Shown here piece by piece: positions 8,902-49,436 of a DNA stretch of 64,000 bases. The position numbers and the translations under genes are program-made. This DNA is from Takakia lepidozioides (taxonomy: Eukaryota; Plantae; Bryophyta). The notes beneath the pieces were generated by a model that was not told the origin of the DNA, did no database searches, and worked only from the letters and a program-made list of their open reading frames with translations. The stretch lies in assembly GCA_030704615.1 (NCBI GenBank), contig CM060732.1, forward strand, positions 73,656,001-73,720,000. The letters run 5' to 3'. Positions within the stretch are counted from its first letter, which is position 1; each line of letters starts with the position of its first letter.

Positions 8902-9490
8902 ATGCCCGAAAAGCAACGCGGGGAAGGGATGCACCCGCGTGCTCGAGCTTCTGAAAGAGGATCGAGAGAGGGAGTCCACAATGCCTGTTCTGGCACTTCT
9001 GCGCATGTGAAGATGCTTTGTGAGGCAGGCAGGCTGACAGAGGCTCTACAGACTTTAAACCAAAGAGGCATTTCAGCAGATTCAGATACTTATGTCTGTC
9101 TCTTGCTTAAGTGCATCAAGATGAAAGGTCTGGAAACTGGAAAGCAAGTGCACACGCACATTATCCAAAGTGGATTCACGCCAAATGTTTTTCTACTCAA
9201 CACCCCTGTCAACATGTACGGTGAGGGCTGGAGCATCACCAAGCATTCAACAGAATGCCTCAACGATCTTGATCACGTGGAATATAATGTTGGCAGGATT
9301 TACCAAGCATGGGTGTTGTAGGAATGCTTTTGAGACCTATGAGCAGATTCTGCACAAAGGGGTGAAGCCCAACCACAGCATATTTGTTTGTGTTTGCAAT
9401 GCGTGTGCAAGCCTGGGAGCTCTGGAAAAGGGGAAAGAGGTCCATGGTGACATCGTCAAAGCTGGAATTGTACCATATGTCATTCATATG
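8902..9490 (+). pseudogene. Truncated PLS-class PPR gene, copy 1
   Basis: LCEAGRLTEAL..YVCLLLKC..GKQVHTHIIQSGFTPNVFLLNTPVNMY, then a frameshift to ITWNIMLAGFTKHG..KPNH.IFVCVCNACASLGALEKGKEVH; the array is cut off at ~9490. Confidence 0.9.
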
Positions 9491-13600: not shown

Positions 13601-15090
13601 CGTTATGAAGTATCTTTTCTCTACACCTCTACATGCATCAGAGTACCATAAGCCATTTGGACTCCCAATCAGCTTCATAAAGTGTCTTTCATTCTTTGTA
13701 GGGTTTTAGAATCCTTACCCTGCAATTTAGTATGACCAAGTGTTCAGTAGAATGCCCCAACGATCTTTGATTTTTTCAGGAAAGCGATCTGATGGAGAAT
13801 CTCCACAGGTGACGAATGCGCAAGAGCAGCTGGACACACAAGTACATCAGTTCAAGATGGAGATATCTCCTGCAGCAGAGAGCCTATGTGACTATGTGAC
13901 GAGGTACGTGGGAGCATCGAGGATATGGAGGGAGTGTTCAACAATATGGTTGAACGAGATTTGGTGTCATGGAACGCCATGCTTGTAGGATATGCATAGC
14001 AGGGGTGCGGGATGGAGGCCTGGGGGAAGGGGTGAAGCCCGACCACATCACGTTTGTGTGCGTTTGCAATGCTTGTGCAAGCCTGGCAGCCCTGGAAAAG
14101 GGCAAAGGGTGCATGGTGACATCATCAAAGCCTGAATTGTACCAAATGTCATTCTGGACACTGTCCTGGTGAACATGTATGCGAAATGTGGGTGCATTGA
14201 GGATGCAAAGGGAGTATTTGACAATGTGGCTGAATGAAATGTGGTATCGTGGAATCCGATGATCGCAGGATATGCCCAGCATGGTTGTCATAGGGAGGTC
14301 CTGCAATTATTTGAAGGAATGCAAAAGAACGGCTTGAAGCCGGACAGTATCACCTTTATATGTGTTCTCTATGCATGCAGCCACACTGGCCTACTGAATA
14401 AAGGAAGACGCTACTTTGATTCCCTGAGTCAAGATCATGGTGTCACCTCGCCAGTAAAGCACTTTGGCTGCATGGTGGACCTTCTGGATGAGCGGGACAA
14501 GTACATGAGGCAGTGGACCTGATTAATAAAATGCCAATCAATCCAGATGTTGTGGTGTGGAAGGCCTTGCTTGGTGCCTGCAGAATCCATGGCAATGTGG
14601 AGATGGCTGAATGTGTGGCAACATCTATCCTCAAGTGGGATGAACAAGATGCCGCGACTTATGTGGTGCTATATCAAACATCTATGCTGCAGCTGGCAGG
14701 TGGGGTGATACTGCAAAGGTGAGAAGAATGTGAAGGTTAGAGGGGTTAGAAAGGAGCCAAATGACAAGTTGCATCCCAGAATTAAGGAAATCCATGTTGA
14801 GCTGAGAAGATTGTCTGGGCAGATGAAGGAGGCGGGGTACGTGCCTGACACACGCATTTTATTGCATGATGTGGAGGAAAGGAATTTTCTCTTAGCCACC
14901 ACAGTGAGAAGTTGGCCATTGGTTTTGGGCTGATCAGCACAACTCATCAAGAATCTTCGAGTGTGTGGAGACTGCCACACCTCCACCAAATTCATCTCAA
15001 AGATTGTTGGCCGAGCAATTGTTGTATGGGACGCTAACTACTTTCCACCACTTTGAAGATGAGATTTGTTCTTGTGGTGATTACTGGTGA
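10610..15090 (+). pseudogene. PLS-E-DYW pentatricopeptide-repeat RNA-editing factor pseudogene, copy 2
   Basis: Many near-identical P-L-S triplets (VVSWNAMLAGYAQQGRGMEAL / HITFVCVCNACASLAALEKGKEVH / VILNTALVDMYAKCG) with numerous frameshifts and stops. E domain (PDVVVWKALLGACRIHGN), HSEKLA at ~14898, [10 protein letters not shown] and terminal CSCGDYW* ending at 15090. Confidence 0.93.
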
Positions 15091-16489
15091 AAGGATGTTT
15101 TCTTGGAAAGATGCTAGGTATTGCTTCATTCATTGATCTGTGTAGCTACTCAGACCATCCACCATTTCTTGATAGTGGGGTCTACCCGGCATAGGTAGGA
15201 AGTCAGCCCACAATTGCACTTGACTGAAGGGGTGATTTTTTACTGATTCTGGTGACAGTGGATGGAAATCAGAGTGTTGTCCTAATTCTGGGTTTGGGTG
15301 GTGGAGCTTCTCCAAAGCTTGAAGATGGAAGTGAATACGAATTTTAATGAGCTTGATGAAAGGGGCAGCCCTGTGCACAAGTTTGTTCAACATCTTAAAT
15401 TTGGACATGTTTGTTTGTTTCTCGTGGTGTGGCTTTGGATGGAGCCCTTGACTCACAACAGCAGGACTTCTAGACATTACCCTGAGTCCTTCCACTTCTT
15501 CACTGCTTGTAGAGGCGAGTCTCTGTGGATCAGAAGACCATAAATGGAGATGCTAGTGCAATTGGTAAGTAAAGCAGATGAGCGGTCAGCTGGGGAACAA
15601 GTTGTACAAGAATCAAAGGCAACTGACAAGGAGCTGTGCAACAAAGACAAGGCAACTTCAATGGACTCCTTGAGCACTTCTGTTGGAGGAGGCAAAGCCT
15701 GCTGGAGTGAGGGAGGGGTGCAGTCAGATCACATCCGGAGGCAGGTACAAGCCAAAGTTGTGTTTATCCAAGGCGAGACCACAATTCTCTACTCAGAGCA
15801 GTGTGAGTTGCATACTGATCTATCATATTATTTTGACCCTCTTAATTATTAACTATGATGGCCCAGAGGCCCCATACATCAGTTTGGAATGTTTCGAGTG
15901 GTGCAGCTGTTATCTTGCACTCTTACTTTTCGGGGTGCTGTACAGACTGCTGGTGGCCAGATTCCCAAAGAGCTTGCACCTTATCTATGGACAGCAGGTG
16001 ATGATGAGGTGGCCATTGTTGGGATTGCATTTGGAGGTGCTGGTGAGCAAGCTGGATGCTGGTTTGAAGGAGATGAATGCAATGCAACTCGATGAAAAGA
16101 AGTGCTTTCACCAGGAACAGTTTCACCTTCAATCAGTGCGGGTATCCTAATCTCTTGCTCGTTAGAAACAGCTCCATTCTGGCTGAGGAGAAGCTCGATT
16201 CATTGAAAAGGATTCATGCTCGCAAGAGGTAGGGCACATTTAAATTTCAGACATGGTATACATCAAATACAAGGCAAGTCTCCCGATTCCATAAGCAGTG
16301 ATACATCAAGTATATATTATAACGCCATTTTGAATGAAATGATGGTGCAGACAAGTCTGCTTCTGGTACCAATTTGGCTTATAGAGACAATGGCGGATAT
16401 GCTTCTTCCAGCAACATGCGACTGCAAGAAGGAACCTCCTTCTTCGACCTATTTCACCCTGTTTTTCCATATCATCAAGCACCTCAACC

Positions 16490-18717
16490 ATGACCACAGC
16501 TTCTGGAAGAGGAACAAGAGAGGGAGTCCACAATGCCTCTTCTGGCACTTCTGGGTATGTGAAGATACTTTGTGAGGCAGGCAGACTGAAAGATAAGACT
16601 TTAAACCAAGGAGGCATTTCAGCAGATTCAGATACGTATGTCTGTCTCTTACGTAAGTGCATCAAGATGAAAGGCCTTGAAGCTGGAAAGCAGGTGCACA
16701 CTCACATTATCCAAAGTGGATTTTTTTCTACTCAACACCCTTGTCAACATGTATGTTAAGTGCGGGAGCATCATGGATGCTCACCAAGTGTTCAACAGAA
16801 TGCCTCAACCATCTTTGATCACGTGGAATGTAATGTTGGCAGGATTTACCAAGCATGGGTGTGGTACGAATGCTTTGGAGACCTATGAGCAAATGATGGG
16901 GGAAGCCCAACCACATCACATTCCTTTGCGTTTGCAATGTGTGTGCAAGCCTGGGAGCTCTAGAAAAGGGGAAAGAGGTCTGTGGTGACATCGTCAAAGC
17001 TGGAATTGTACCAGATGTCATTCTGAACACTGCCCTGGCGGACAGGTATGCCAAATGTGGGTGCATTGTCAGACCTATATGCACAGCAAGGGTACGGGAT
17101 GGAGGCTTTAGAGATCTAGGAGCAAATGTTGCGCAAGGAATGAAGCCCAACCACATCACATTTGTTTGTGTTTGCAATGCGTGTGCAAGCCTGGGAGCTC
17201 TGGAAAAGGGGAAAGAGGTCTGTGGTGACATCGTCCAAGCTGGAATTGTACCAGATATCATTCTGAACACTGCCCTGGTGGACAAGTATGCCAAATGTGG
17301 GTGCATTGTCAGACCTGCAATTGTACAAAATGTCATTCAGAACAATACCCTTGTGGACATGTATGAAGGGAGTTTTCGACAGTAAGGCTAAACGAGATGT
17401 GGTGTCGTGGAGTGCGATGATTGCAGGATATGCACAGCAAGGGTGTGGGATGGAGGCTTTGGAGACCTAGGAGCAAATGATGTGCGAAGGGGGTGAAGCC
17501 CAACCACATCACATTTGTTTGTGTTTGCAAGGCGTATGCAAGCCTGGCAGCTCTGGAAAATGGGAAAGAGGTCCGTGGTGACATCGCCAAAGCTGGAATT
17601 GTACCTGATGTCATCCTGAACACTGCCCTGGTGGACATGTATGCCAAATGTGGGTGCATTAAGGATGCAATGGGAGTTAAATTTCAACACCATGGCTGAA
17701 CAGATGTGGTGTCGTGGAACGCGATGCTTGCAGGGGTATGCACAGCAGGATGGGGGATGGAGGCTTTGGAGACCTATGAGCAAATGATGGGGGAAGGGGT
17801 GAAGCCACATCACATTTGTGTGCGTTTGCAGTTCGTGTGCAAGTCTGGCAGCCCTCGAAAAGGACAAAGAGGTGCATGGTTGCATCGCCAAAGCTGAAAT
17901 TGTACCAGATGTCATTCTGAACAATACCCTCGTGGACATGTATGCCAAATGTGGGTGCATCAAGGATGCGGAGGGAGTGTTTGACAGTATGGCTGAACGA
18001 GATTTGGTGTCATGGAATGCCATGCTTGCAGAATATGCACAGCAGGGGCGCGGGATAGAGGCCTTGGAGACCTATGAGCAAATGATGGGTAAGGGGTGAA
18101 GTCCAACCACATCACGTTTGTGTGCGTTTGCAATGCTTGTGCAAGCCTGGCAGCCCTGGAAAAGGGCAAAGGGTGCATGGTGACATCATCAAAGCTGGAA
18201 TTGTACCAAATGTCATTCTGGACACTGCCCTGGTGGATATGTATGCGAAATGTAGGTGCATTGAGGATGCAAAGGGAGTATTTGACAATGTGGTTGAATG
18301 AAGTGTGGTGTCGTGGAATCCGATGATCACAGGATATGCCCAGCATGGTTGTCATAGGGAGGTCCTGCAATTATTTGAAGGAATGCAAAAGAATGGCTTG
18401 AAGCTGGACAATATCACCTTTATATGTGTTCTCTCCGCATGTAGCCACACTGGCCTACTGAATGAAGGAAGACGCTACTTTCATGGTGTCACCCTGCCAG
18501 TAAAGCACTTTGGCTGCATGGTGGACCTTCTGGACGTGCGGGACAACTACATGAGGCAAGGTACCTGATTAATAAAATGCGAATCAATCCAGATGTTGTG
18601 GTGTGGAAGGCCTTGCTTGGTGCCTGCAAAATCCATGGCAATGTGGAAATGGATGAATGTGTGGCAACATCTATCCTCAAGTGGGATGAACAGGATGTCG
18701 CGACTTATGTGTTGCTA
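16490..18717 (+). pseudogene. PLS-E class PPR pseudogene, copy 3 (DYW part missing)
   Basis: Same 5' block as copies 1 and 2 (SREGVHNASSGTSG.VK.LCEAGRL), frameshifted PLS triplets, and an E domain nearly identical to 14241-14670; it breaks at ~18717. Confidence 0.9.
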
Positions 18718-31312: not shown

Positions 31313-31593
31313 GGTGGGCAACAAATTTGATCAGACCAATACCTCACTCAATACTAAGAAGTGATCCAGTCAGCACCATTCTCACTGCAGAAAAGTATGG
31401 AAGCATTCCAAGAGTTAGTATCCGAACTGAGGTTGACCACGCTTTGCCACCTGAGATGCAAGAGGTTTTCATTAAGCTCATTCCACCCACTCAGGTGCTC
31501 ACCATCAACTCTGATCACAGTCCTTTCTTCTCCGCCCCAGTTGAGCTGAATCAGATGCTCTTGAACATCGCCCATACACATATTGACCCTTGA
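31313..31593 (+). pseudogene. Orphan last exon of a methylesterase (MES/SABP2-type alpha/beta-hydrolase)
   Basis: WATNLIRPIP..EKYGSIPRVSIRTEVDHALPPEMQE..INSDHSPFFSAPVEL contains the catalytic Asp and His motifs. No upstream exons were found on this strand. Confidence 0.8.
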
Positions 31594-32133
31594 AGTCAGA
31601 TATGAACAGTGAGCCTGCACTGTGGGGAAATACAGGACTTCTAAGTACTGACACAGCCTGACCAATGCTGATGTGTTTCTTGTCAGTATTCTTTGATTTG
31701 ATTTGAATTGGCAACTGTACTGTCTACCTTGACTGTCATTACTCTACGAACTACCACATAGCTCGTTGTTTTCCTTAAACATGCGTTTGAATCGGATGGG
31801 TGTTTGCAGAGAACCAGAGAACCGTTGTTGAACATACAATCTTAGATGTACATATCTTTATCAATTCTAGTCTCACAAGGAGGTTTGCAATTAGCCGGCT
31901 AGTTTGCAACTGTGTGGTGGATGCAGCTGTATGCACCGCCCCCGTTTACTTGTGTACGGCTTATAATCTGAAGTGTCGAATGTCGAATGCACGTATTGTT
32001 TGTGTACTGTGCCTCCAGTGCTGGTTTTACTTGTCCTGAACCTATTTCGAAATGCTGTATTCAAGCCATTCCAGGTTAGGAAATGATTATCAGGGAATCT
32101 GGATTGGGTGGCATTTGAAGTGTGTGCGTGCAG

Positions 32134-33268
32134 GGAATCGTTTGGGGACGTAGCGATATTTCTATGCCTTTGGCATGTTCGCCGCGCTTGGCTGAAACAT
32201 TCGTGGCGTATGCCCGATCCATACACTCGCAATGATGTTTTGAAACAGCTTGGCGACGTAATGTACGGCATTAACGCTTGTGTGGGAGTCACCCGAGAAG
32301 AGTGGGCGCTGGAGTGACTGGAAGATTTGCATTATTCCTATTCGCTTGCGCGTGACTTCCTACATTATATCAAAATGGAATGGGTCCCAAAACTGAGCAT
32401 GTGGATCACGGGGGCTTGAAATATTCCCCATGCAAGTCAGGATACTAATGCCGCAATTGAATCTTGGCATGAAAATTTGAAGGTTCGTTTACGCTCGGGA
32501 AAGCAAAGGCTTGATGGCAGGAGAATTGATTGGCTGATCAGCGAATTCGTGGGTCCTGTTCTAACCCACTATTGGTATAGAGATAACTTGAAATCGAAAG
32601 GCTTCAAAAAGAATGTACGACAAGAGGAATTTATCAGCAATGTTGTTTGGATTGCGAGGGAGATCCCTGACGTCAATGTTCATTTGCCCACTGTTCCTGG
32701 TCATCCGGCGATTGTGGATAGTGTTCAAACGGCCGGTCGAAGCTACACAATCTATGCACCTGCAACCACCTGGGCTTGTTGCGATTGTCCATGGGCTTTG
32801 AAGGGTAACTTATGCAAACATCAAATCCACGTTCTTCAATTGATGAAGCCAAATCTGAAGGAAGGGCTTATTGTGAAGCTCTGTGGCACAAAGCTCGGGA
32901 CCATTCATGGAGGTCTTGACATGTTGATGAAATCGGAACTTCCAGATATTGATGCAGAGGAGGAAGTTGTGAATCTAGCAGAGCCTACGGAGTGCTCAGC
33001 ATCATCCCAGCGTGGTCGGCAGGAGCCGTCGGATGTTTCATCAATTGAATCTGAGATGAAGTCCTTGTCGCTTCTTGGCAATGAGAGTGAAACAATGCGC
33101 AAACATCTGCTTGCCGAGCTTCGTTGTGTTCGTGGGAGGCTATCCACTTTACAAGTCAGAATCGACAAAGGTCTGTTGCACCCTCTTCAGGCAGTTCCAT
33201 TCATAAAAAATGATGATGGAAACAACGTCCCTTGCCAGGAAAATAGATTTTGTAGACCGGTTCCATAG
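32134..33268 (+). mobile_element. C-terminal half of a Mutator-type DDE/SWIM transposase (pseudogenised)
   Basis: After acceptor TGCAG|: ESFGDVAIFLCLWHVRRAWL (CxxH), EWVPKLSMW, ASQDTNAAIESWH (catalytic E), RIDWLI, and the SWIM finger CDCPWALKGNLCKH (32780-32821). In-frame stops at ~32315 and ~32418. Confidence 0.85.
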
Positions 33269-33399
33269 TAAGTGACCATTGAGTCCATTGGCAATGAAAC
33301 TTATTTTGTGATCACCAGGTTTAATATGAAGTACATGTCTGTTCATGGGTTGTTATTCACTTTGCCATTCCATCCACATTCAACCTATGTAACCCACTC

Positions 33400-34740
33400 A
33401 ATGGGACACCCACAGGCCGGGGTGACACAACGCAGGGTTACACCGTCTGGGGTTTCATACGTAACATAGCTCTACTTGGTGTAACTCGCATCTGTGGTAC
33501 TCCACACAGTGTAACATAGACGAGTGTAACCCTCTTCAGTGTAACTCATTGTGGTATAACTCCAAGTATAACTGCAATGTAACTATCAACAGTATAACCC
33601 AGTATGTAACCCCATAGAATATTGCTGTCAGTGAGTGGTGTAACTCTAAGAATTATAAGTCGATGACTACAGTGTGACTACAGGGTCTGGGTTAGTCTGC
33701 CGGGGTTACATGACCCTTCAATACAAAGTGGGAAGACGTTGAAGTCGAGCACCTTTAGTCGCCAACACTAGCCCCTGTATGTGTAACCCCTCTATGTGCA
33801 ACCCCTCTATGTGTAACCCACCCTGCATGTGTAACCTATATATGTGTAACCCCTCTATGTGTAAGCAATTTAGGTGTATCCCACCCTATATGTGTAACCC
33901 CTCTATGTGTAACCCAATTTGTGTGTAACCCACCCTGTATATGTAACCCATGGATGTGTAATCCATGAGATAGATAATCATTCCGTTCAACCTATGTTAT
34001 GGACCAGTGTAGCCTTCCGGAGTGTAACTTGTTGTTGTGTAACCCCAAGAAATATGTATCCCGACCACATGTAACCCCCACTGTTGTCACCCCATCGCAT
34101 GTAACCCATTGTACAATTTGGGGTGCATGCTGTAAACCCCGATGCTACATCACCCCATCTTATGTATCCCCACGACACGTAGCCCTTGTATAGGCAACCC
34201 TGCCCACTGTCACTGTGCATAGTGTAACTCAGAACTGTGTAACCCTATTGAGTGAGTGTAACCCAGAGTGTTGTAACTCCAAGAAGTATCAAATGTCAGC
34301 CCCACTATTGTGACCCCATCGTATGTAACCCACTGTACATAGCCCTCATGTATGTAACCCCATGTAGTATAACTCTGAGAACTTCAGTGCACAAAAACTT
34401 CGATGCGGAAAAAAAAAAAAAAAAAAAAAAACAAGTGCGCATAGTCGAGGTGGGGTTGCATGCCACGAAACTCTACTGTTTCAGCTACGTGACCCTGACA
34501 TAGCCAGGAAGGCCCAACCATGTAACCCTGAGAGGCCCATTGCATGTAACCCATAAGAGTAACCCCATGTTGTGAGACCCGGCATGGTGTAACCCATCAC
34601 TTATGTGTGAACCCACAGAGTGTAAGCTTATTGCCCCAGGGCCCCAAGGTGTACCCAAGTACTTGTCTATGACTCCACTTCATGTAACCCAATAAGGTGT
34701 AACCCCATGTAAGCCCATTGCATGAAACCCAAACTGTGAA
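33400..34740. repeat. Dense TGTAACCC motif array between the transposase 3' end and the ULP1 gene 3' end
   Basis: Dozens of (G)TGTAACCC variants, e.g. ATGTGTAACCCCTCT units at 33779-33950; an A22 tract at ~34410. Confidence 0.85.
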
Positions 34741-34790
34741 GTGTTACGAACAAACCACATAGAAGCAAAAAATGCATCAAGAGACGCTAT

Positions 34791-37700
34791 TTATTTCTTT
34801 GGCCATTTGACCAAGTTTTTGTCCATCTCGTCACATAGCCAACTAATCATATGAGTACGGGAAGCTATCATGGTTGACTCGTCGAACCAACTTGCAGTAA
34901 ACGCCCACCTATGACGGGTTCGATCTTCTGTGATTTTCACATTGAACTTCCACTCCAAGTAAAATTGCACAAAACAAAGTGCATAATAGCCGCACTCCCA
35001 ACAGCTCCATTGCTGGGGGACACTGGCCTCAAACCATTCCATCCTCTCCATGACGTAACTGAAGTCATCAGATCCAGGCATGCAATCAAAGAACGCTATG
35101 GCAAAATTTCGCAAAATTCCTTCAATGAGTTTGGGTCGGGCAATGGTTTTATGGGAGTCCAAATGTATTATCCGACCTCGGCGCTCTAAAACAGCAACAC
35201 TCCAGTGATCACTGCAACACAAACAAAGCCGTAACGTTAGAATAGAAAAAAAACTCTCCAATGAAACCCATTGTGGTGTAATCCAGTAGTGTAACCCTTT
35301 GTATTGTAACTCTAAACGGTGTAACACAACTAATCAGCAGTGCAAATCCAAACTAGTGCAACTCAATGTAGAACAGAGGAGTGTAACCCAACATGATCAG
35401 TCAACTCTCAAATTACTTACTTGAAGACAATAGGGATGACAACCACGTCCACAAGATCTCGATTCTTTGTGAACACCATCCCTCGGGCATCCTGAGTATA
35501 CCATACTTGCACCAACCCGAATAGCGTCTGCAGATCGTTACCATTGGTACGCCTGACATGCCACTGGAAAGGAGCACAGATGACAAACTCAGGTCCGATA
35601 GCCTTAAGCAATTTGGCCTCCAGAAGTTTGTTGTAACCCGAGAGCAATGCATCTGTGACTGTTGCTTTTATTTTATACATCAGCTCAAAATTTGTCTCTT
35701 CCAAGTAAAACTGTAACGGGGTAGAAGCCAGGAAGGCATCGCCATAATAAAACTTCACTTCGGGCACCCCAGGAGGGTCCGACACCATTCTGAACTTCGT
35801 CAAGTACTGTAGTTTTAGTCTGCACAAATCTCATAATTTACCTCTACATTATTTAAGAGGAGATGGCAGAGGAGAGCTCCGCATTTTGCGGTGAGGGAGA
35901 GAGGGCCCGAGGGTCGTCTATGGTTCCCAGCAAGCACCGACTACCCCTCGACCTCACGAAGCAGGAGAAGCTCAGGAGGATCAGATCCTGGCTCAACCAG
36001 TCTCCTTCATCGCTTTATCTCATTTGGTGACCCCAAGCAAACCTCCTTTACTCCCAGCCGCCTTTTGGAGGTCCTCCCCTCTAACACCCAACCTCGGATG
36101 CCACACCATCCCCGTTCTCTGTCCATTCAGTAGGCCTTCATCATTCCCCCATCAATGGCAGCCCGCAGGACAAGAGCAAATCAACCCAATAGGGACACGA
36201 TGAGTGTGACCCGCGTGCATTCCTGGATACTATACTGAAAGAAACCGCACATTACGAACATTACGATGCATCATACAAGAGTTATAATCAATATTCGCAA
36301 TCAGAGAGGATAAAAGTACAATGAGGTACCTCGAACGCTCCCGCAAGTGCTTGGCAAGGACCTCTTGCTGCTGGACAACGTCAACCTCGGAGACCCCTGC
36401 ACTTTTTCCTTTCGATTTGGTTCGCTGTTTTTTGGGTGTGACAAGAACATGTACTTCTTTGTCAGCGCTAGGGGGTTCAGCCAACTGCTTTCTTTGAGCA
36501 GGCGGCTGTTTTGACCTCCTGGGATTCTCTACAACCCTGACAATGCCGCCGGTAGGGAGAATTTTTGGGCCAGATGTGCCTTGTTCTCACGCTTCTCAGT
36601 GTCACCCTTCTCTTCGGCTACCTCCTCAGTGTCACGCTTCTCAGTGTCACCCTTCTCTTCGGCTACCTTCTCAGTGTCACTATTCTCGGTGTCACCCTTC
36701 TCTTTGGCTGCCTTATCAGAGTCACTCTTCACAGTGTCACCCTTCTCATCGGGTTGCTTCCCAGTGTCACCCTGCTGAGTAACAATCTTATGTGTGTCAC
36801 TCTTCTCAGTGTCACGATGCTCCGCAACATCCTTCTCTTCGTGAGTCTCCATAGTGAAAACGCTTCTCAGTGTGACCCTGCTCTGTGTCACCCTTCCAAC
36901 TGACAATCCTCGGTGACACCCTTCCCCGTGTCACCCATGTCGATGTCACTCTTCTTTGCATCAACCTCCTCAATGCCATCCTTGACTGTGTCGCCCTTCT
37001 CCGCACTGTCACCCTTCAAGACCATGTTGACTAGCGGAAGAGCATCATCCGTCGCGACTAGTGGCCGTGGCAAATGAGTGTCACCCTCCACGACTAATGA
37101 TAGTGGAGTGTCATCCATGGCAGTGTTATACTCACAGACATCTGCCATGTGGGTTGGCTGTGGGGTGTCACCCCTACCAGTGTAACCCATGTCAATGTCA
37201 TTCTCAACGGAAGTTGCAGTGTTCACGGGCAATGGTGTGTCACCCACGACAATGTCCTTCACGGCAGTGTTAGCCACACCGGTATCCGCAGTGTCACCCT
37301 GAGGTGCAGTGTAACCCTCCTTCCCTGTTGCTCCTCTCTGCGCAGTGTCACCCTCAGGTGCAGTGTAACCCTCGGTTTCAGGGCCTCCTCCCCTTGCAGT
37401 GTCACCCTCCGCATCAATGTGACCCACAAAGGCTCGGTGACTGTCTGTCTGCTCAATCCCCCAGACAATGTCACCCTCAATACTGACCACCTCCTCCAAT
37501 GTGACATGTTGTGGCGCGAAATGACTTGGATCTTCGGTCTGCATCATTCGAACAATGTCATTCTGAGAGAGGTTGACCACATGATCCTCACAAATACTTA
37601 CATTGCTGCATGGAGGGTTCAACCCAGCATCTCCAGATTCAAAGTCATACACAGACTCTGGGTCAAACGGGTCCCTGGTTCTTCGATTAAGACCTCCAAA

Positions 37701-40381
37701 AGAAATGACTGGGGCTGCGGACAAAGAGGTTCGCACTTGGGTGTTCCACCTTGATGTATCATCTTCAGTATCAGTATCAGAATTCACGGGCAAATCCCGC
37801 GTCAAGTCTACTAGGTTCATCCCTAAGTGCAGCTGGGTTGAGTACAATTCACCAACTTGCGACAAAGATACAACGGCAAATTGACTTGGAATGATGTCCT
37901 CGTCATGTACATCGTCACTTTGCGGGGCGGAAATTGAATGAAGACGAGATTTAACCATCTCCTCATCCTGTAACACAGAGGGCCCATCACTCGTCTGCGC
38001 GCCCCCTGTATCGCATTGTGGAGGGGCCCCATACACAACTTTGTGAAGCTCACGTTGAGCCTCAAAAAGGTTTTTGAACGCATTGGCGACTTGATTGGTC
38101 ATGAGCTCGGACTCATCTGCATCGGGGAAAAGACAAAGGTTTTTAGTGGTGGAACGAGGTTTTTGAAAGTGTAAGGGTTACACTATGTAAGAGTTACACT
38201 GACTAGGACAAGACAGTGGTTCGGATTACACGATGTGGGTTACACCACCCTGTTAGAGACAGTAGTTTGCAATGGGTTACACTACCTGGGTTACACTAGT
38301 GAGATTACACAACGAGAGGGTAACAAATCTAGGGTAACACAACGAGGGATAACATTAGGGGTACACTGATTACAGGGTTACATACTCCGAGGGTTACACT
38401 GATTACAGGGTTACACACAACGAGGGTTACACTGAGTACAGGGTTCCACATAACGAGGGTTACACTGATTACAGGATTACACACAAAGGGGTTACACGAC
38501 GAGAGGGGTGACAGTGGATGGAGTAACACTTACAGAGATACCAAGGCACTACAGACCCAAGGTCTCTCATATACTGGATGCCCAAACGCGCATTGAAGTC
38601 CATTTCTGTTGGTGATTCGCTGAAGAGGCCACAACACCAAAGCTGGATAAACGATTCTTTCTGATGGATCGCAAAGTGATGGGCGGCGCGACGATGGCTT
38701 GCCTTGCAAAACTGTATAGCTCCGTTGATCTTAACTGACCTGTCACCCCACTCTTCTGTACTCAAACTCGATCTTAAGTCCTCGAGCTCAGAATCCAAGG
38801 TTGCAATTCCGTCACCAGGTTGTGCAAAGTACATTAGACTAAAGCCGTAATACTCATCGACCAGGTCCTTCACCTTTGAGGCCGTAAGAGCACTTTCCAG
38901 AAGGTCAGTCGTGAACCCCAACCTGGGATGCGTTTGGGAAACTGACCTGCCATGATTTCTTACAACGTTGTGGGCCAGAATTCTCAAAAAGAGTGGTGGC
39001 GGTCCAATGTGCGGTTTGGTGAGATTCTCCATTTGACTAATCAATCCTTCCGCAAAATCGCGAGTGAATTCCAACGGATCTGGAACAACCAAACCTTTGA
39101 TTCCATCTACAGTAATAGTGATGACAAGAGGATTTGAAGCATCGTCAAGGTCGGTATTGCCAACAGCTGGTTCGTCCATCGTGTCATCATCATGTGGGCT
39201 TGGCTCTCTCGATGGACTCGTGTAAGTCTCCCACCTTTTTTCTTTTTCTGCTTTGGCATGTCAGGATGCCCAATGCTCTCCAAATACTCCTTCACCCGAT
39301 TCAATTCCTCTATCATTAACGGGCCATGATCCGGCTGGGCTGTAAACGCCTTGTGGGCAGCAACAACACTGTCCATATCATCGCTTGTAAGATGATGTCG
39401 AGCTCCCTGCGCAATACGGCGTGAGGGGTTATTCTAGAGAAAAAGGTTACAGCACGAGGGGTTACACATGAAAAATGGGAGGTGTAACCCATTTTCATGG
39501 GTGGAAAAATGGGTGGGCTACACGGGGTTACTCAGAGGTGGGTTATACACCATAGGGATTTTTAAAAGGGGTCCTCTGTAGGTGGGTTACACGCCACAGG
39601 AGAGACAGGGGGGGTAACACAAAGGGTTACACGGATAGACAACAGCCCGAAATTTGAGAAACAGAGAAATGGCAGGGAATCTAACTTGATTGTCCGTCGA
39701 TAGAACCCAACTTGATTTTGTAGCTGTCGCATGGACTGTACCCTCGCCTCGCGCAACAAATTCTTGGAATGCCGGCCAAAACCCCTTCTCATTGACATTC
39801 GGAAATGGGAACTGAGGAATAAGGCCATGCGGTAGCAGAAGGATTGAGCCTGGAGTTCGCTTTCGCAAGATGAACCTTGAGCTCCGGTTTCCCCAGTTTC
39901 CAATGTTGATTTTCTTTGCAATAGGGACAGGTAGAGGCGGGCTCAATCGCCGCTTGTCTCTCTCGTTAGGAACCTGCCGAACAGAAGGACCAGGGACAGA
40001 AACAGCAGGAGCACCAGAAGATGGAACCTTTGTAGCAGAAGTAGCCAAAGAAGGTACAACAGCAGGCACTTCAATAGGATCTGCAATCTCACCCAAAGCC
40101 ACCCTATTTTGCAGAATCCATGCATGATATGCATGAACAGAAGAAGCTGGAACAGAATTCACCACATTTTCAACAGCCATGGCATGCTTGAGCTCCGCAT
40201 CAGAAAACGGTTTTGTTCCTTTCGGTCTGGCCATACATGCGGCCGTTCCATCGACGATATGCCGATTCAATCTGCTTCTATCTACCTTTACTTGCCCACA
40301 GTAAGGACATTTGAACTTAGGCCGGCCCTTTGCTCCCTCCACCTTGGCCTCTCTACACCTGGTGCGGCAGTACGCGATCAT
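34791..40381 (-). pseudogene. Transposon cargo gene: N-terminal C2HC zinc finger + acidic GDT-repeat linker + C-terminal ULP1/peptidase C48 domain (frameshifted)
   Basis: Exons ~40381-39686 (FKCPYCGQVKVDRSRLNRHIVDGTAAC), ~39405-38540, ~38118-36330, ~35820-35420 (..DLVDVVVIPIVF) and 35211-34791 (DHWSVAVL..IIHLDS..VPQQWSCWECGYY, the His-Asp-Gln-Cys catalytic set of ULP1). The introns coincide with motif arrays. Joining these into one gene is inferred. Confidence 0.72.
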
Positions 40382-41784
40382 TGTAGCATGCTCATGCTCA
40401 GTGTACTAGAAGCGAACTCGTTCGCCATCCCTCTTCAAGTGATCAAATGGAATAATAGCCTCTCCAGGGAACATATAACAATCAGCCATGGCAAAAGAAA
40501 AAGCTGACAGAAGAGAAGAGAAGAACAAGAGCAAGACAAGACCAAGAGAATTCCGAAGAACCCACAGCAGGGAGCACGCACAGCAAGGAGTGCAGGAAGA
40601 ATAGGAAATGGCTGCGAGAAGGGAAAAACTGAACAATGATCAAAGAACGAAGAACGAAGCTAGCTAAATGTCACCCGTAAGGCACGTCGGTTAAGCGACA
40701 GACGGCGGTTCATTAAAATCTGGCGGCTTGCAATCAACTATATCTGTACCGACTCACACGTGTATGAGCTGCAATCCCGGTGTCACCCGGAATAGCGGAG
40801 TGTAACCCGTAACCCTACACTTGTGAGCGCGACGAACCAGCCGTTACCCGCATGCGAGACACGTCGAGTGTAACCCTCCGTCATGTACCCACATATGATG
40901 TAACCCTTCGTCACAACCTCATGTACCCCTAGTCTATGTGACTCCCGAACACAACATCGATGTAACCCTGTCATATCAAACCATTAGTATGCAACCTCCA
41001 GGTAAACATGGTCAACGTAACGCCCCACCCATGTAACCCTAGCCTATGTGGCTCCGCGAGCGCAACATCCACGTAACCCATCAAACATGTCAACCCCATC
41101 TAAACCTCCATTACTAAACCGTCTACCAAGCCACCATGTATTGAGAAAGAAAACACCGTGTAACCCCCTGTGTGTAACCATAGCACACATGACGCAGTCA
41201 TATAAACCATCAGACATGTAACCGGTTGACAGTGCTTGCAGAACACGCATGATTCGATACGTATTGCATCCATAATAGCGATGAGTAGGCTGCCCCGGCT
41301 GGTGTGTAAACAAAAGATACACGAGAGGAGAGTGAATGGGCACCCCGTCAAATGAGCGGCTGCTTGCATGGCTAGACCGAAAGAAACAAAACCCTTTCCT
41401 AATGCGGATATCAGGAATACCATAGCCATCGGGGACGGTAACAAAACAACAAGAATGACATTGAGAAAGAAAAAAGATAGAGACAACCGTATCAATCATA
41501 GAGAAAACCGTAGTAATAGATTTGCCGGATCGCTGCGCGGAAAGCGTTGTCTTGCATGCTGCTGGGATGACGATACTGAACTGAATGAACTACAAATCTT
41601 GCGCATTGATGTGTGAAGCCGATTGGGCGCCATGGGAATTGCAGAAAGCTGATGCCCCAAAGCAAAAAAACGAGCAAGCTAGGAATCTGAAAAACGGATG
41701 GAGAGAGCAAATTAGGGTTTTGGCCTCCATTTCAACCTCTATTCGGCCGTCGGATAGTTTACACGTGTATGATGTACACGAGGC

Positions 41785-42990
41785 GGAGTTACAGAGGGTT
41801 ACATGGGTTACAGAGGGTCACAGAGGGTTACATGGGGGTGAGGGTGACACTCTGCGGTGTTACAGAGGGATACACAGGTTACAGAGGATTACATAGGTTA
41901 CAGAGGGTCACAGAGGGTTACGTGGAGTGAGGGTTATATTCTGCGGTGTTACAGAGAATTACATGGGTTACAGAGGCTTACACCTGGTGAGGGTTACAGA
42001 GGGTCACAGAGGGTTACATGGGGGTGAGGGTTACACTCTGCGGTATTACAGAGGGTTCATGGGTTACAGAGGTTTACACCTGGTGAGGGTTACAGAGGGT
42101 TACATGGAGTGAGGGTTACATAGGGGTGAGGGTGACACTCTGCGGCGTTACAGAGGGTTACATGGGTTACAGAGGGTTACATGGATTACAGAGGGTTACA
42201 TGGGGGTGAGGGTGACACTCTGCAGTGTTACAGAGGGATACACGGGTTACAGAGGGTTACATGGGTTACAGAGGGTTACACTTGGTGAGGGTTATAGAGG
42301 GTCATAGAGGGTTACATGGGTTATAGAGGGTCACAGAGGGTTACATGGGGGTGAGGGTGACACTCTGCGGTGTTACAGAGGGTTACATGGTGGTGAGGGT
42401 TACAGGGGGTTACAGTGGGTTACAGGTGAGGGTTACATGGTGAGGGTTACAAAGGGTCATGGGGTTACAAAGGGTCATGGGGTTACATGGGTTACAGAGG
42501 GTTACATGGGTTAAGAGGGTCACAGAGGATTACATGGGTTGCAAAGTTTTACAGAGGGTTACATGGAGTGAGGGTTACATAGGGGTGGGGATGACACTTT
42601 GCAGTGTTACAGAGGGTTACATGGTAGTGAGGGTCACAGAGGGTTAAATGGGTTACAGAGGGTCACAGAGGGTTACATGGGTTACAGAGGGTCACAAAGG
42701 GTTACATGGGTTACAAAGGGTTACAAAGGGTTACATGGAGTGAGGGTTACATAGGGGTGAGGGTGACACTCTGCGGTGTTACAGAGGGTTACATGGTGGT
42801 GAAGGTTACACTTGGTGAGGGTTACAGAGGGTCACAGAGGGTTACATGGAGTTAGGATTTCATAGGGGTGAGGGTGACATTCTGCGGTGTTACAGAGGGT
42901 TACATGGTGGTGAGGGTTACAAAGGGTTACATGGAGTGAGGGTTACATAGGGATGAGGGTAACACTATGCGGTGTTACAGAGGGTTATGT
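41785..42990. repeat. Terminal/subterminal array A of the Mutator-like element (GGGTTACA-rich minisatellite)
   Basis: About 1.2 kb of GAGGGTTACA/TGGGTTACA/GAGGGTCACA units with a higher-order unit GGGTGAGGGTGACACTCTGCGGTGTTACAGAGGG. Confidence 0.92.
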
Positions 42991-43649
42991 CACGGACATA
43001 GCCTAGAAGAACTTACCAGGAATAAATACCAGAAATTATCCATTATTCCTATTATCTTCCGATATATGGTGACGTACAAAGTGGCACAAATAGCCGATCA
43101 ATTTACATTTTGGGGCCGGGCTGCATGCACGGGCGGGCTGCCCTAGAGCCGGGCAATTGGGACCAGATCCTTTTCGAGGTGCCATGCCCAGGCCGCTACA
43201 GTACTCTCATCATGATAGCGGGATAATTCACAGGGCGGCAGGGCATGCCCAACTGAACCGGCAAATCGCAGATATCATAACGGGGCACCGCCACTTCGTG
43301 CATGTCAGTAAACGGGTCCTCAACTTGCTGACTGGAGAACGTCTGTCACTCCGTTGCAAGGGAAACTCCGCTTCAAGGTTTTTAGTCGGTGCTCTTCTTT
43401 CCAATTCCACACCACCTTCTTCAATCTTTGCGTTCCTCTCCTGTTTTTGTTTTGATTCTCCACTGCAATCACACGCCACATTTTCATGTATTTCGTTTCT
43501 GTCACCGCAACATTTCCTCTCCAAGCATTTATTGCTCAATTCCCTCGTCTCCGGGAATTTTGTTAGCAAATTAAAGTGCAATTGTAGCGATCCTTCATTC
43601 AGCAGACATTTGCACTTGTCCCATTGAATCATTCCCTGTTAGGTACAGA

Positions 43650-43950
43650 GGATAGCCCCAGATCCTATCAAGAGTTCAATGATTCGTTGAGAGAGCAGCA
43701 ATGGAGGCTTGTTTACAACTCAAGGTCCTATCAAGAGTTCAATGCTAATTCGTTGAGAGAGCTGGGAGGCAATGGAGATTGTTTACTTGACTCAAGGTCC
43801 TATCAAGAGTTCAATGCTAATTAGAGCAGGAAAGCAATGGAGGATTGTTTACATCTCAAGGTCCTATCAAGAGTTCAATGCTAATTCGTTGAGAGAGCAG
43901 GGAAGCAATGGAGGATTGTTTACAACTCAAGGTCCAATCAAGAGTTCAGT
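43650..43950. repeat. ~64-71-bp tandem repeat, five copies
   Basis: TCCTATCAAGAGTTCAATG at ~43663, 43727, 43798, 43862 and a variant at ~43933, with similar intervening sequence. Confidence 0.9.
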
Positions 43951-44169
43951 ACTTGGCAGGGAGGTGAATATTTCCATCAGAGGCTGATCGTAGTCCGATA
44001 TATTTTTTATACTCTCACACTTGGCGGTGTGGATTCCGCAAGTAGCCAGATCAACAGTTGTTGCTTTATGTCCTGCACGCTGCAGTAGGTCCACTGTTTT
44101 GTACCAGCACCATGCGCCATGGCTCCCTCCATGCACGACTACAAAGTGGTGGGGTCCTTCGCTCCCCAT
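43945..44169 (-). pseudogene. First exon of a methylesterase (MES/SABP2 family), truncated
   Basis: MGSEGPHHFVVVHGGSHGAWCWYKTVDLLQRAGHKATTVDLATCG..DYDQPLMEIFTSLPSTE; it runs straight into the tandem repeat with no splice donor. Confidence 0.88.
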
Positions 44170-44789
44170 CCTAGCTGTGCGAGTCGAGAACCAAGTATGG
44201 TGCAATCTGTCTAGTCTAAGCACTTGACAAAACGGATAAATAGAAGTATTTCCTTGGCTCTCTACAGGTAGTTGAATTTTTTGAACAGATTTGTGTCTCT
44301 AGATCATCTCTCTCTGTCTCACCAAGGTAAGCTACAGGCAACAACATGTGCTCAATTTCAGTTAGCACTAAACAATTCAAATTCAAGCTCGAAGCATGGT
44401 GCAGGTCATCAGAAGAGGCCGTAGTGCGAGGTGTCAGGACAGAGACACACTTCAGGATCAAAGCTTTTTAAGCTACACAAAGCTCCCCGGGAGTTGAATC
44501 ACAATTGCTCCTCCAAGATGTGGTGTTGTATAGTACCATTGAAACCACTGGAAAAGCTTGAAAGTTAGAAGATTCTTGGCACTGATCATGGAACACTACT
44601 AACGGCGCCATTCCTGTGAAAAGAGTCCTTCAGGAAAAATCGACTGCCCTGGTCCTCACGCACTATCGATCGGTTCGAGAGCTGTATATTCGTAGCTGCG
44701 TCTTCCGCGCCGATAGTCTTGCAATGTCTGACAAGCGCTTTTATTGAGGACATCGTCACCTCCGTCCATGTTGTCAAACCAGAACAAAA

Positions 44790-45240
44790 GACGATGTCGA
44801 GGTGAACGAGTCAATCTTAGCAACACCAAGATCATGGTTTTCAATGGCCAGGCGGACCGCAGATCCATCTTCAACCAACAGAAAATTGAATTGTCAAATC
44901 ATACCGGTATCTGGGTCTGGTTATCCACTCTCCAAAATTCCAGTTTGCAGCAACTGCCCAAGACAGATTGACGAAGGGCAAGGCGGATGCAGGCCAAATG
45001 CAAACAGATACATCTGGGCCACCCCACCAAACCAAAAAGTGGCTATTTGACAGCGTCGTCACCCCGGCCGCCACTTATGGTTGTGAGTTCTGGGCACCTG
45101 GTGTCCCAGTCTCCTAGTGGGAAAAATTCTGGAACCATTGTGCACAGTCATCTTTTCTCCAAGCAAAATCTTTGTTATTACAAGCCCTTCCACCCAAGGG
45201 GCTCCTGGCAAGAGCCCTCGCAACATCTATTAGGCTCAAA
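44790..45240 (+). mobile_element. Degenerate LINE reverse-transcriptase C-terminal fragment (RTE/L2-like)
   Basis: Across frameshifts: VNLSNTKIMVFN..F..QKIE and KWLFDSVVTPAATYGCEFW. Confidence 0.65.
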
Positions 45241-45345
45241 ACAGCAGGTTCGCTCCTGATATGCTCGAGTGTGCAGTTTTTTTTAGCGCAATCTCATTGC
45301 TGTACAAATAGGACAAGGCTCTTGTGAAGGCAGGAATAATAGGAA

Positions 45346-46749
45346 TAGCATAGATTTCTGCGTCCACATCGTCGACAACAAAAACATTTGGCCTCCAATC
45401 TGGTTTGCTCTGAAGAAGTCGGTCGTAAAGACGTTTCATCTAGGGGCTCAGGTCAATCGTTTTATTTCTCGTTGATATAATATAAGCAACAAGTATGCCG
45501 TTGAGCCATTCGTCGAACACCATCATGGTATACATTGGGAACTGCAATGTCGCAATGGTACAAAAATGAATAAGGTGAGTGTTGTAATATTGGAAACAAT
45601 TGCATGACACTCACATTTCAGATGCAATGAAAGGTAAAGCGTGACACGAATACCTTATTTTCGTTGGTCCCAAATGTTGCATCGCAGGATACCACACGGT
45701 TGTGTCCCAAGTCGATCATTTTCTGTTTTTGCCACTCCGTTTGTATTCCAATCACGAATTTCAAATCACCCGCCACTGGCGCTGTCTCTTCATGGTAGAA
45801 GAAGACGTTTTCAGGATTGCTATCGACCCACATACGTACAGTTTGTGCATCATCTGGATGTTTTTTGTAACTCTCAATTACAAGCTTGTCGGCAATGTTT
45901 CTCACGTCGTACTCGAACAAGAAACAATCGCGACTCCACTCCATGCCTGGCTGAGACGCACGAGCTTCCTGGAGCTGTTGAGTGTGTTGTGTCATAATCA
46001 TAGCTGGAGATAGGCCACTGCGAAGACTATCGACGATCCACTGTTTCATATCTTGACTGAGACGAGGGGCAACGTGAAATGGGAAGAGGGGTCAGCTGAA
46101 CCATGACATGGCTTTCTTTTTGCATCCACATGCTATTTCTCGAAGTATGTGATGATTGCCAACTCTGGATTTAGAAAACACTGGCCAACATTGAAGCTAC
46201 ACGTACACCCACGTTTGTATGACTCTCCGAAATCTGCTGCCTTACGTCCGATTCGCTTGACTGGTTTTTTATTATCAGAGGCTGCTATCGGTTTTTCTTT
46301 CTTCTTCACAATCGGCGGGTCCGTGCGCCTATCTACCGGGCCGTAGCAGCAATGGTACCTGCAAAGAAAGCATACAAAGCGAGGAGGGTTATCGCCATAT
46401 ACGACTTTGTTAGGCCAGCTGAAAGAAGTGGGGCTGGAAATGTTATACAACCCTCGTAAGTGACTTACTTATGCCACTGACGATAACTGTTTGCACGCGG
46501 TGTCGTCAGATCTGACAACTTACGGTACCTTCGATCTTGAACATAAAATTGGGTCTTCCCATCCACTCTACTCCTTTCTCCCTCCAGAAAATCAGGAATG
46601 CGAGACCATGGAACGACAGCTACTTCGATGGATATCCATTTCTCTTTTCCCTGGGAAACCTGGCGTATCCAACGGAGGTTTGTGTGATTGAAAAACCCGT
46701 CTATGGGTAGCTGTAGGATGCATTTCAAATGAGATACCAAATGCTGCAA
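45346..46749 (-). mobile_element. N-terminal half of the Mutator-type DDE/SWIM transposase (pseudogenised)
   Basis: Exons: ILQLPI..NLRW..VAVVPWSRIPDFLEGE; YHCCYGP..SYKRGCTCSF..H....PCHG; DDAQTVRMWV..VFFY..FVIGIQTEWQ..GHNRVVSCDATFGTN (first D); FPMYTMMVFDEW..FVVDDVDAEIYAI (second D). It ends abruptly at ~45346. Confidence 0.87.
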
Positions 46750-47089
46750 ATGACAGAGTTCTCACGCCTCGTCTTTCAAACCATTTGATTCCAATGTTGC
46801 TTTGCGTTCCTCGTCTAGCTCCGTCGCGGCAGCACATGCCATTACCGGCAATAGTACCACCAGTACAGTACAAATCGCAGAACACACACGGGCAACGCAA
46901 CGGAGCCCTTGGGACCGCACGACATCTACGCACCTGGTGAAAATGACGCGCGATGATGGAGTTACACGTGGGTTTTGATGTCACCGAATCGTGTAACCCA
47001 AGTTTGAACTCAAAATATCTGACACCTCTCGGAGCCCGCCAATTTTTGTCGGGCACCAAGGGGCTACACGAACAGGGGTGACATGCGTT

Positions 47090-47725
47090 GGGGATAAAGG
47101 GTGAGGTGACACGAGCTAAGAGTGACACGATCGGGGGTTACACGGAGGGGATTGACACAGTATCGGGGTTACATGGTGGGGTTACAATATGAGAGTTACA
47201 CAATGAGGGTTACACAAGGCGGAGTTACAAGGGCTGACGTGCAGAGGGTTACATAGATGATGGGGTTACACGAGGAACTGGAGTTACACAGAGAGGGGTA
47301 TATGGGATAACATGATACAAGCTTGCATTGGGGTTACACGATGCGGGTTACATATGGTGGGGATTACATGGGATCACATAATGGGAGGGTTACATGATGC
47401 GGGATAACATGGAGTGAGGGTTACACCTCGCGGAGTAACAGAGGGTTACATGGGTTACAAAGGGTTACAGAGGGTCATGGGATTACATGGGTTACAGAGG
47501 GTCACATAGGGTTACATGGAGTGAGGGTTACATTCTGCGGTGTTACAAAGGGTTACATGGGTTACAGAGGGTTACATGGGTTACAGAGGGTTACATGGTG
47601 GTGAGGGTTACAGAGGGTCACAGAGGGTTATATGGAGTGAGGGTTACATGGGAATGAGGGTGACACTCTGCGGTGTTACAGAGGGTTCATGGGTTACAGA
47701 GGGTTACATGGTGGTGAGGGTGAGG
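47090..47725. repeat. Terminal/subterminal array B of the Mutator-like element
   Basis: Same units as array A, including GAGGGTGACACTCTGCGGTGTTACAGAGGG (~47657), in the same plus-strand orientation. Confidence 0.9.
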
Positions 47726-47729
47726 GTGG

Positions 47730-49436
47730 GGCAAAAGAAAATTGAACCGGGACGCCACCCCCTTCTTTTGCAATCAGCAAACCTACGTCCGCTTCCAGCT
47801 TCAAAAAGCTGACACCTGTACTAGCAACAAATACTTTCTGCTTTCTCAACGTCGTAGATGGCTCCACTAGGGCTTTGATCAACGGAGAAAAGATGGACCT
47901 TAGCTCTTGCGTCTCAGGGGATTCATAGTGATTTACATTTATTCTTCCCAATACCTGCGCTTCATCCATAACTACAGTGAAAGCGCACTCAAGCTTCTCC
48001 TCTAAATCCGTCCACAGTTTTCTTATCCTAGCATTTAGCCCTTCTGAATCTTCCAGGGAAGTAACCACGTTAAAAAGTTTCCGAGTAAGCACATCATATA
48101 GATCACTACGATCTGCACCAAGGAAAGCATGGAATTGCACCTAGAGCATGAGCCATTGCAGAGGACTCAATTCAAGAATTTCTTGGAGACAAAATTCCAA
48201 GATTAACAACCTTGAAAGAATGGCACACCTCATACGTTCCATCACATTCTTCTGATTCGTTGCCTTATCGGAGCCTATCTTGTGAGAACTCACAGAGTCG
48301 ACATTGTCTGACCCACCGTTCCCTTTGGTTCTAGCTGTCCAAAAAAACCCCACTTCTCTGCAAGCAACTCATAAAGAAACCGAGTTTTCCCACTCCCACT
48401 CACTCCAACAACTGGCACAATACTAGTCGCTCGATCCATATATCACCAACGTCTTTAGTCCAACCAACAGTTAATTTATCCAGTAAAATGATTGGATAAC
48501 CACGGTGGTCGAATGGCACACCGTTCTGTATAGGCAAATTGCACCCCTTCTCTTTGAAAGTGTCCAAAAACTTAGAAAATTTCAATTTTCATGCGTGCAT
48601 AACCACATTCACTGATTCTGTAAGCAAAACCCGCACACTTTCCGTTACTCCTTTTTACACTCCTGACAGATCCATGTATTTGGAGAAAAATAAGAGCATC
48701 CTATCTTGCAAATAATTGAACAATACAAAAGATAGACCAACAAAGACTATGACAAAAAAAATGCAAAGAAAAGGGGAACATGGAAGAGAAGGCTGAGTAA
48801 CAGAGTAGCTCTACCTAAAAACCTGTTTCCAGAGGTTTTTAATCTCTCCGCAGATCTCTCTCCCCCTGCAAATATGTCAGATTTTGTCAAATTTCAAAAG
48901 ATCTGCATTCATCCAAACTCTTACCATGGAAATACTGATGAAACTGCTGTTGTAGGGCAGCATCTTATAACCCCAAACCCTAAACCAAGGACAAACTAAA
49001 TTATCTGAGCACACATTGGCCTCTATCAGTCATTGAATATTCATAAGTTTTTAATCTTTTCCCAAATCTCTCTCCCACTACATATATGTCAGACTCCACC
49101 CTGGACACATGCATCAAAGTACCGAGAAGAAAGCAAACAAGATAGGAAACACTTCAATGATCTCTCTGGCACAAGCATAGCCGATGTGTTGCACTCACTA
49201 ACCCTAAGTAACACAGCTGCACAGCAACACACCTAAGAACACAGCCGACGAGTAAATTCACCTTGCTTATCAACCCTGAGGAGAATCAATTTTTCTTCGC
49301 GCAGCTGCTCCGTCTCTTTCCGCAAGTAGGTGACCACTTCGGCGCTTGTGGAAACCTTCAGTTGCTCTTCCACATCATCAATTTTTTTCTCTACTATCGT
49401 GATGTTCTGCTTCACCTCTTCAATTTCGGCGTCCAT
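47730..49436 (-). pseudogene. Crinkler/CR-type protein with N-terminal coiled coil and P-loop NTPase, frameshifted and cut by the transposon array
   Basis: Exon 49436-~49262 MDAEIEEVKQNI..YLRKETEQLREEKLILLR; Walker A GVSGSGKT at 48406-48383 followed by RFLYELL..WGFFWT; AILSRLLIL..WLML; Walker B TVVMDEAQ; RSIFSPLI..STG. Confidence 0.65.

Follow-up and report, generated by a model that had tools for sequence, protein, structure and literature searches.

A large Mutator-like element (MULE) with a transposase gene and a zinc-finger/ULP1 protease (ZnF-ULP1) gene lies in two disjointed parts in a 64,000-nt stretch of DNA from the moss Takakia lepidozioides (GenBank assembly GCA_030704615.1, contig CM060732.1, positions 73,656,001 to 73,720,000). 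This whole stretch is referred to below as the window, and all coordinates are given in its numbering. The best-supported reading is that one inversion split one element, to which we assign a probability of roughly 65%; such an event would be an ordinary structural accident and not a new kind of system. The transposase gene is split, its two halves are exactly complementary, the split point corresponds to a conserved intron, the parts of the element are single-copy in the window, and an intact relative has the layout that one reversal gives back.

The two transposase halves

The transposase halves, and the remnant of an intron in front of the second one, are located as follows.

45346..46632, minus strand: transposase N-half, in four exons (46632-46483, 46381-46082, 46073-45654 and 45553-45346)
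32134..33268, plus strand: transposase C-half, with the end of the catalytic core and a putative SWIM-type zinc finger; a pseudogene
32100..32133, plus strand: intron remnant, comprising the final 34 nt of the phase-2 transposase intron up to its acceptor AG, and common to the sibling contig L001 (see below)

The N-half is carried by the minus-strand open reading frames (ORFs) 46450-46133, 46049-45618 and 45439-45236, and its reading, ...FVVDDVDAEIYAI, stops at 45346. The plus-strand C-half, RESFGDVAIFLCLWHVRRAW, has its start at 32132/32134 behind ...gtgcag|G, and stays in a single frame to 33268. Both placements agree with the first-pass annotation of this DNA, which had the N-half end on the minus strand at ~45346 and its continuation lie 13 kb away on the plus strand, behind a splice acceptor at 32134.

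Taken alone, the transposase ORFs of the window gave no Pfam match. A SWIM-type C-x-C...C-x-H pattern is visible in the C-half ORF 32477-33268, and the SWIM finger family PF04434 scored 15.2 bits (E 0.016) on the window ORF, below the cut-off of 19.6. In an exhaustive profile search, the transposase ORFs aligned over their full length with 333 relatives, and PF10551 was detected in two of three listed relatives of ~40% identity, namely P0152 (a weak match) and P0153. By way of these relatives and of L002, an intact element described below, the window transposase can be classed as a MULE/MURA-type DDE transposase.

We compared the spliced transposase with its relatives exon by exon. In tblastn searches with P0002, P0021 and P0031 the N-half was matched up to 45344 and the C-half from about 32132-32147, and full-length relatives span both halves with zero residues missing and zero repeated. 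Residues 308-377 and 382-642 of P0031 are covered by the window halves, and P0002 has 12 residues between AEI and FLCLWHV, the same number as the joined halves. When L002 was aligned by tblastx, its uninterrupted ORF jumped from window position 45353 to 32102/32207 at a single point. The nearest relatives are common to both halves: L002 and L003 share 46-55% identity with the N-half and 41-49% with the C-half, which does not point to the different subfamilies that had been raised as a possibility at the outset. Since the relatives cover both halves without gap or overlap, the L002 ORF switches only once and the nearest relatives are shared, we conclude from these alignments that both halves stem from a single gene, severed at one point. 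No further transposase fragment was found in the window by tblastn with the relatives, and protein searches with the N-half ORFs of 143 and 67 amino acids returned a nearest match of only 46% identity and no N-half sibling.

A conserved intron at the split point

The intron at the split point was surveyed in 80 related loci (L004-L083) from moss-associated metagenome contigs, to which the ENA contigs L002 and L003 were added. Both flanking exons were seen in about half of the 80 loci, and in all of these they are colinear on one strand. Twelve junctions could be read; the exons lie 400-900 bp apart, the borders are AG|GT...AG|G, and an Arg codon is split in phase 2. L002 and L003, which were found through P0152 and P0154, have no intron at this site. 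The acceptor in the window, cag|G GAA TCG, fits the conserved phase-2 intron exactly. Judged from the related loci, most of which share it, the split point is a conserved phase-2 intron of the transposase family. The moss-associated metagenomes, from the Joint Genome Institute (JGI), hold dozens of diverged copies of this family, many of them decayed.

Homologue searches returned one close sibling of the window copy, L001, a 1,596-bp contig from the British Columbia run SRR15431198, which is shotgun DNA of Takakia lepidozioides (PMC9021317). L001 is 96% identical to the window over 32100-33295 and unrelated to it before 32100. Upstream of this homology edge it carries a GTTACAC-type array of at least 395 bp, of which the window shows nothing on either side of the split.

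Arrays, cargo gene and the effect of one reversal

The remaining parts of the element are a cargo gene and arrays of a short motif.

34791..40381, minus strand: cargo gene(s), with a C2H2-like zinc-finger ORF (39587-40381), further ORFs and a ULP1/C48 protease domain (34791-35327)
41788..42990, plus strand: terminal array A, made of GGGTTACA-type units, upstream of the cargo gene; outer edge at ~42990
47123..47725, plus strand: terminal array B, upstream of the transposase; outer edge at ~47725, adjoining a minus-strand P-loop NTPase-like gene
33500..35500, minus strand: internal array C, with TGTAAC-oriented units on the plus strand, overlapping the 3' part of the ULP1 gene

Arrays A and B had been described as sharing units and facing the same way, and they do: they match in direct orientation only, at 70-77% identity over up to about 620 bp, the homology stopping at 42989/47691. 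The core 10-mer GAGGGTTACA occurs 49 times against 0.1 expected, and all its copies in A and B are on the plus strand. A and B are thus direct as assembled and become inverted only after the proposed flip. Further arrays exist besides A and B, since the block that would have been flipped also holds motif arrays of the opposite orientation, at 33.5-35.5 kb and 40.5-41.5 kb. At ~41.5 kb the polarity of the motif switches, with the TGTAAC units of 40.5-41.5 kb meeting the GTTACA units of A, and the A end is therefore itself a large imperfect motif palindrome.

In the cargo gene, the ORF 34791-35327 matches the ULP1/C48 family PF02902 (E 3.5e-4, 20.9 bits against a cut-off of 20.7), and candidate His, Asp and Cys residues are visible in it. 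The zinc-finger Pfam families that were hit on the cargo ORF all remained below their cut-offs. Among the 80 related loci, tblastn detected no homologues of the cargo. The 3' end of the cargo gene faces the 3' end of the transposase C-half, so that, as assembled, only the C-half converges with the cargo; the whole transposase gene does so only after the flip.

The N-half, the C-half, the cargo gene, array A and array B each occur once in the window. Each of the two terminal arrays precedes a gene, B the N-half and A the ZnF-ULP1 gene, in the same polarity. According to a brute-force check, a single reversal is enough to bring back transposase order, array polarity and gene convergence together. 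Since the arrays lie upstream of their genes and the 3' ends of the C-half and the ULP1 gene face each other, reversing ~32100-45345 yields the layout of L002, with A and B inverted and a length of 13,271 bp plus the missing intron. The first-pass annotation had proposed that inverting ~31.75-45.35 kb gives inverted arrays and convergent genes. That a single reversal suffices is upheld by our analysis, but the join is not seamless, the intron body and the 5' splice site being gone.

Junctions and proposed course of events

At the right junction, J2, the N-half ends in GCTATT and runs on into CCTATT.... Because GCTATT is not continued by the conserved AG|GT, we place J2 at 45345|45346, 2 nt inside the exon. 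The 7-mer TATTCCT is found twice, straddling J2. At the left junction, J1, two stretches have to be distinguished.

31594..32090, no strand: left-breakpoint stretch, either host 3' untranslated region or transposase intron remnant, without match to L001
32091..32099, plus strand: first copy of the 9-nt sequence CAGGGAATC, ending exactly at the edge of the L001 homology

Homology to the element is demonstrable on the left only from 32091-32100, and we found no evidence for the boundary at 31750 that had initially been given. The two AGGT sites within 31594..32090 (at 31881 and 32073) correspond to chance frequency. A second copy of CAGGGAATC lies across the acceptor at 32131-32139, 40 nt from the first, the pair enclosing 31 nt shared with L001; the window holds 5 copies against 0.76 expected. 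The GTTACAC-type array of L001 begins exactly at the position of the left copy. The pair could be either templated filler from end joining or the target duplication of a nested, mostly deleted array element.

No inverted repeats of at least 30 nt are present at or near the junctions. Recombination between inverted repeats was rejected as unlikely, as there are none at the junctions, and ectopic exchange between two inverted full copies was rejected, as parts of only one element are present. A 27-nt similarity between 43030-43055 and the J2 region was attributed to chance, its score being 31 against 29 for the best other pair and 18-24 for the rest.

From these data we infer the following order of events. 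The starting point would have been a ~13.3-kb two-gene Mutator-like element, consisting of an array end, an inward-reading ZnF-ULP1 gene, an inward-reading transposase gene and the other array end. Two breaks would have freed a segment of about 13.2 kb (window ~32.1 to 45.345 kb) for inversion, one at the 3' edge of the exon ending in ...AEIYAI, 2 nt before the conserved phase-2 intron, and one about 2.35 kb beyond the A end, in DNA that is not part of the element. This segment, with the intron tail, the C-half, the cargo gene, array A and the 2.35-kb flank, would then have been rejoined backwards, most of the intron having been lost during the inversion or earlier. Since short direct repeats are present at the junctions and long homology is lacking there, repair would presumably have been by end joining and not by repeat recombination. 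Later decay would have proceeded by C-to-T-type changes.

The edge of the L001 intron array coincides to the base with 32099|32100, which bears on the suggestion that the element's own transposase made the break, taking the internal GTTACA-type array as a cryptic end. We regard this as improbable. If it were true, the inversion would have been left behind by aberrant (alternative) transposition of a MULE in a moss and would constitute indirect evidence for motif arrays as transposase-binding sites.

The putatively flipped flank and the methylesterase fragments

Next to both junctions lie pieces of DNA that do not belong to the element.

42991..45345, no strand: non-element DNA of about 2.35 kb in the putative flipped block, presumably turned together with the element part
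43663-43948: 71-bp tandem repeat, 4.2 copies, starting exactly at the cut edge of methylesterase exon 1
44169 down to ~43950, minus strand: methylesterase exon 1, residues ~4-81 of SABP2-type enzymes (E 6e-20)
31327..31593, plus strand: methylesterase-like last exon (SABP2/MKS1/PNAE-type alpha/beta hydrolase), with its stop codon at 31591-31593, left of J1

No GTTACA motifs occur in 42991..45345. The last exon corresponds to residues ~182-265 of MKS1/SABP2 (E 6e-6, phmmer against PDB). The catalytic middle of the methylesterase is not in the window, and no exons were found upstream of the last exon. Undoing the inversion puts the last exon 1.6 kb before the first exon, and in a brute-force check all 12 orders that restore both the methylesterase gene and the element need 3-4 reversals; that one rearrangement might mend both was rejected on this count. 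The fragments may be relics of a tandem gene pair. To the eye, ~44640-45324 on the plus strand resembles the C-terminal part of the reverse transcriptase of a long interspersed nuclear element (LINE), without Pfam support. A LINE insertion as the cause of J2, likewise without Pfam support, was set aside; no other copy with which continuity could be compared lies in the window or the related loci.

Alternative explanations

Several results weigh against a single inversion as the full account. The homologue searches yielded a single close sibling, L001, which covers the C-half only, and a colinear copy of the same genome was not among their results. Besides the reversal, an extra deletion has to be assumed, since neither side of the split retains the 5' splice site or the intron body. 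The left break is confined only to the interval 31594-32100. Between the flanks of the A and B ends there is no 8-10-nt match, direct or inverted, that would qualify as a target-site duplication (TSD), nor do the two ends share a terminal sequence, their outermost bases being different; the true termini and the 9-11-bp TSD that had been envisaged were accordingly not found at the A and B ends. Absence of a TSD in an old, rearranged copy is weak evidence. Exact-protein look-ups of the ORFs spanning J1 and J2 gave no match, and the junctions rest on one assembly. Finally, the methylesterase fragments are not rejoined by the inversion, since undoing it would put the last exon ahead of the first, and the surroundings therefore have a history longer than one event.

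Such a longer history could have shaped the element as well, be it by nested array insertion and loss, deletions, filler and rearrangement of the methylesterase cluster, or by two truncated copies coming to lie side by side. It would accommodate the missing intron body and donor site, the 9-nt repeat around a 31-nt remnant of the segment that bears an array in L001, and the methylesterase gene, whose first exon is by J2, whose last is by J1, whose middle is gone, and whose restoration together with the element takes at least three reversals. Had two copies been truncated independently, however, there would be little reason for them to stop at the same codon or to add up to exactly one element, and the single reversal sets transposase order, array polarity and gene convergence right at once. 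We therefore deem a multi-step origin of the split unlikely, though not negligible. A smaller inversion of 32100-42990 only, with 42991-45345 as an older, unflipped 2.35-kb intron insertion, would likewise restore the transposase direction, the inverted arrays and the convergent genes. Both its breaks would lie at motif-array edges (the outer A end and the L001 intron-array edge at 32100), which suits cutting by a transposase. It is nevertheless less parsimonious than one reversal, as a further event would be required, one by which the donor site at 45345 was lost as well; the exon end would still run into unrelated DNA, and the element would gain no TSD either, all of which makes this reading quite improbable. 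Last, a ~13-kb block could have been assembled in the wrong orientation, given that neither junction is independently confirmed and that tandem arrays abound in the region. Yet both junctions are in unique sequence outside the arrays, and no inverted repeats exist at the block ends to mislead an assembler. A simple mis-orientation would also have left the intron intact, whereas the donor site and the intron body are gone, and the small junction repeats are typical of biological end joining. We consider an artefact very improbable.

Comparison with known elements

The closest full-length relative of the window transposase belongs to L002, an intact MULE on the ENA metagenome contig ERZ24794443 NODE_2752 (element L002:357-11158). 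It has 656-bp perfect terminal inverted repeats (TIRs) starting with CCCTAAC and a perfect 9-bp TSD, GCATGTACA. An intron-less transposase gene reads inward from one end, and five opposite-strand ORFs read inward in the other half; neither similarity to the ZnF-ULP1 cargo nor a Pfam domain was detected in these ORFs. By its sequence L002 looks complete, young and recently active. It resembles the window element in its transposase (41-55% amino acid identity across both halves), in exon order, in having opposite-strand genes and in its long ends. It differs in that its TIRs are of unique sequence, whereas the ends of the window element are motif arrays, and in lacking the intron at the split site.

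MuDR of maize is the autonomous Mutator element, with two inward-reading genes and TIRs of ~215 bp; these long terminal repeats carry promoters. The window element likewise has a transposase of the Mutator superfamily, long terminal repeats that would carry the promoters and, once the inversion is undone, two inward-reading genes. The MuDR-like layout proposed in the first-pass annotation is upheld to this extent, but the second gene is a zinc-finger/ULP1 protease gene and not a relative of mudrB. With respect to the TSD, the likeness is seen in L002 (9 bp), none having been found at the window copy. Further differences are the ends, which in the window are GTTACA-type arrays of 0.6-1.2 kb that are 70-77% alike, as opposed to TIRs of ~215 bp, and the condition of the window copy, which is internally inverted and dead.

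Transposon copies can also be rearranged by chromosomal inversion or by alternative transposition. As in the rearrangement proposed here, the outcome is a split element, one end of the inverted segment lying within or at a transposon. Alternative transposition, for example of reversed ends as in Ac/Ds of maize, uses the element's own termini as breakpoints and leaves new junctions that carry the target duplication. In the window, by contrast, both junctions lie away from the termini of the main element, and an inverted 9-bp duplication was not seen.

Among the KI-MULEs/Kaonashi and the VANDAL elements of Arabidopsis there are MULEs with a ULP1-domain gene, and VANC anti-silencing factors recognise short non-coding motifs (PMC13317346). 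The window element shares with them a ULP1 (C48) gene inside a MULE (PF02902) and non-coding parts saturated with one short motif. KI-MULE and VANDAL elements are, however, non-TIR MULEs of flowering plants, whose ULP1 capture was dated to around the monocot-eudicot split (PMC13317346), whereas the window element is in a moss and has long terminal arrays.

State of the copy and significance

The copy carries three premature stops and one frameshift. In the N-half, a TAG at 45442-45440 stands where relatives have Trp; in the C-half, TGA codons at 32315-32317 and 32417-32419 face CGA and CGT in L001, relative to which the C-half has also lost 3 nt at ~32210 and 2 nt at ~33227. C>T or G>A changes in the direction of the window copy make up 24 of the 40 substitutions against L001. 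The element copy is silenced and dead; it can neither make transposase nor present inverted ends.

The case provides a tidy, datable example of a large DNA transposon disabled by a local inversion, in a transposase family with an old phase-2 intron retained at the break site. For annotation it is a caution as well, since the halves would be labelled as two fragments with no relation to each other, and the element interior would be taken to include 2.35 kb of non-element DNA with a gene fragment. The inversion opens no new question by itself; of more interest is the family, a MULE that carries a ULP1 gene and motif arrays in a moss of an early-diverging lineage.

Neighbouring sequences

Beside array B, a P-loop NTPase-like gene (47697-48588, minus strand) displays the Walker A motif GVSGSGKT and the Walker B-like motif VVMDEAQ, and its frame runs into the array edge. 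The element may have inserted into this gene; translation of 42980-43700 gave nothing convincing as a continuation beyond array A, which would have shown the flank to be flipped. Farther away, window 8900-18400 comprises about 9 kb of tandem coding sequence with pentatricopeptide-repeat (PPR) motifs, in units of about 100-350 bp that are 70-95% alike and interspersed with stops. As plant nuclear DNA, the window also holds a BTB/ARM-like gene and spliced genes.

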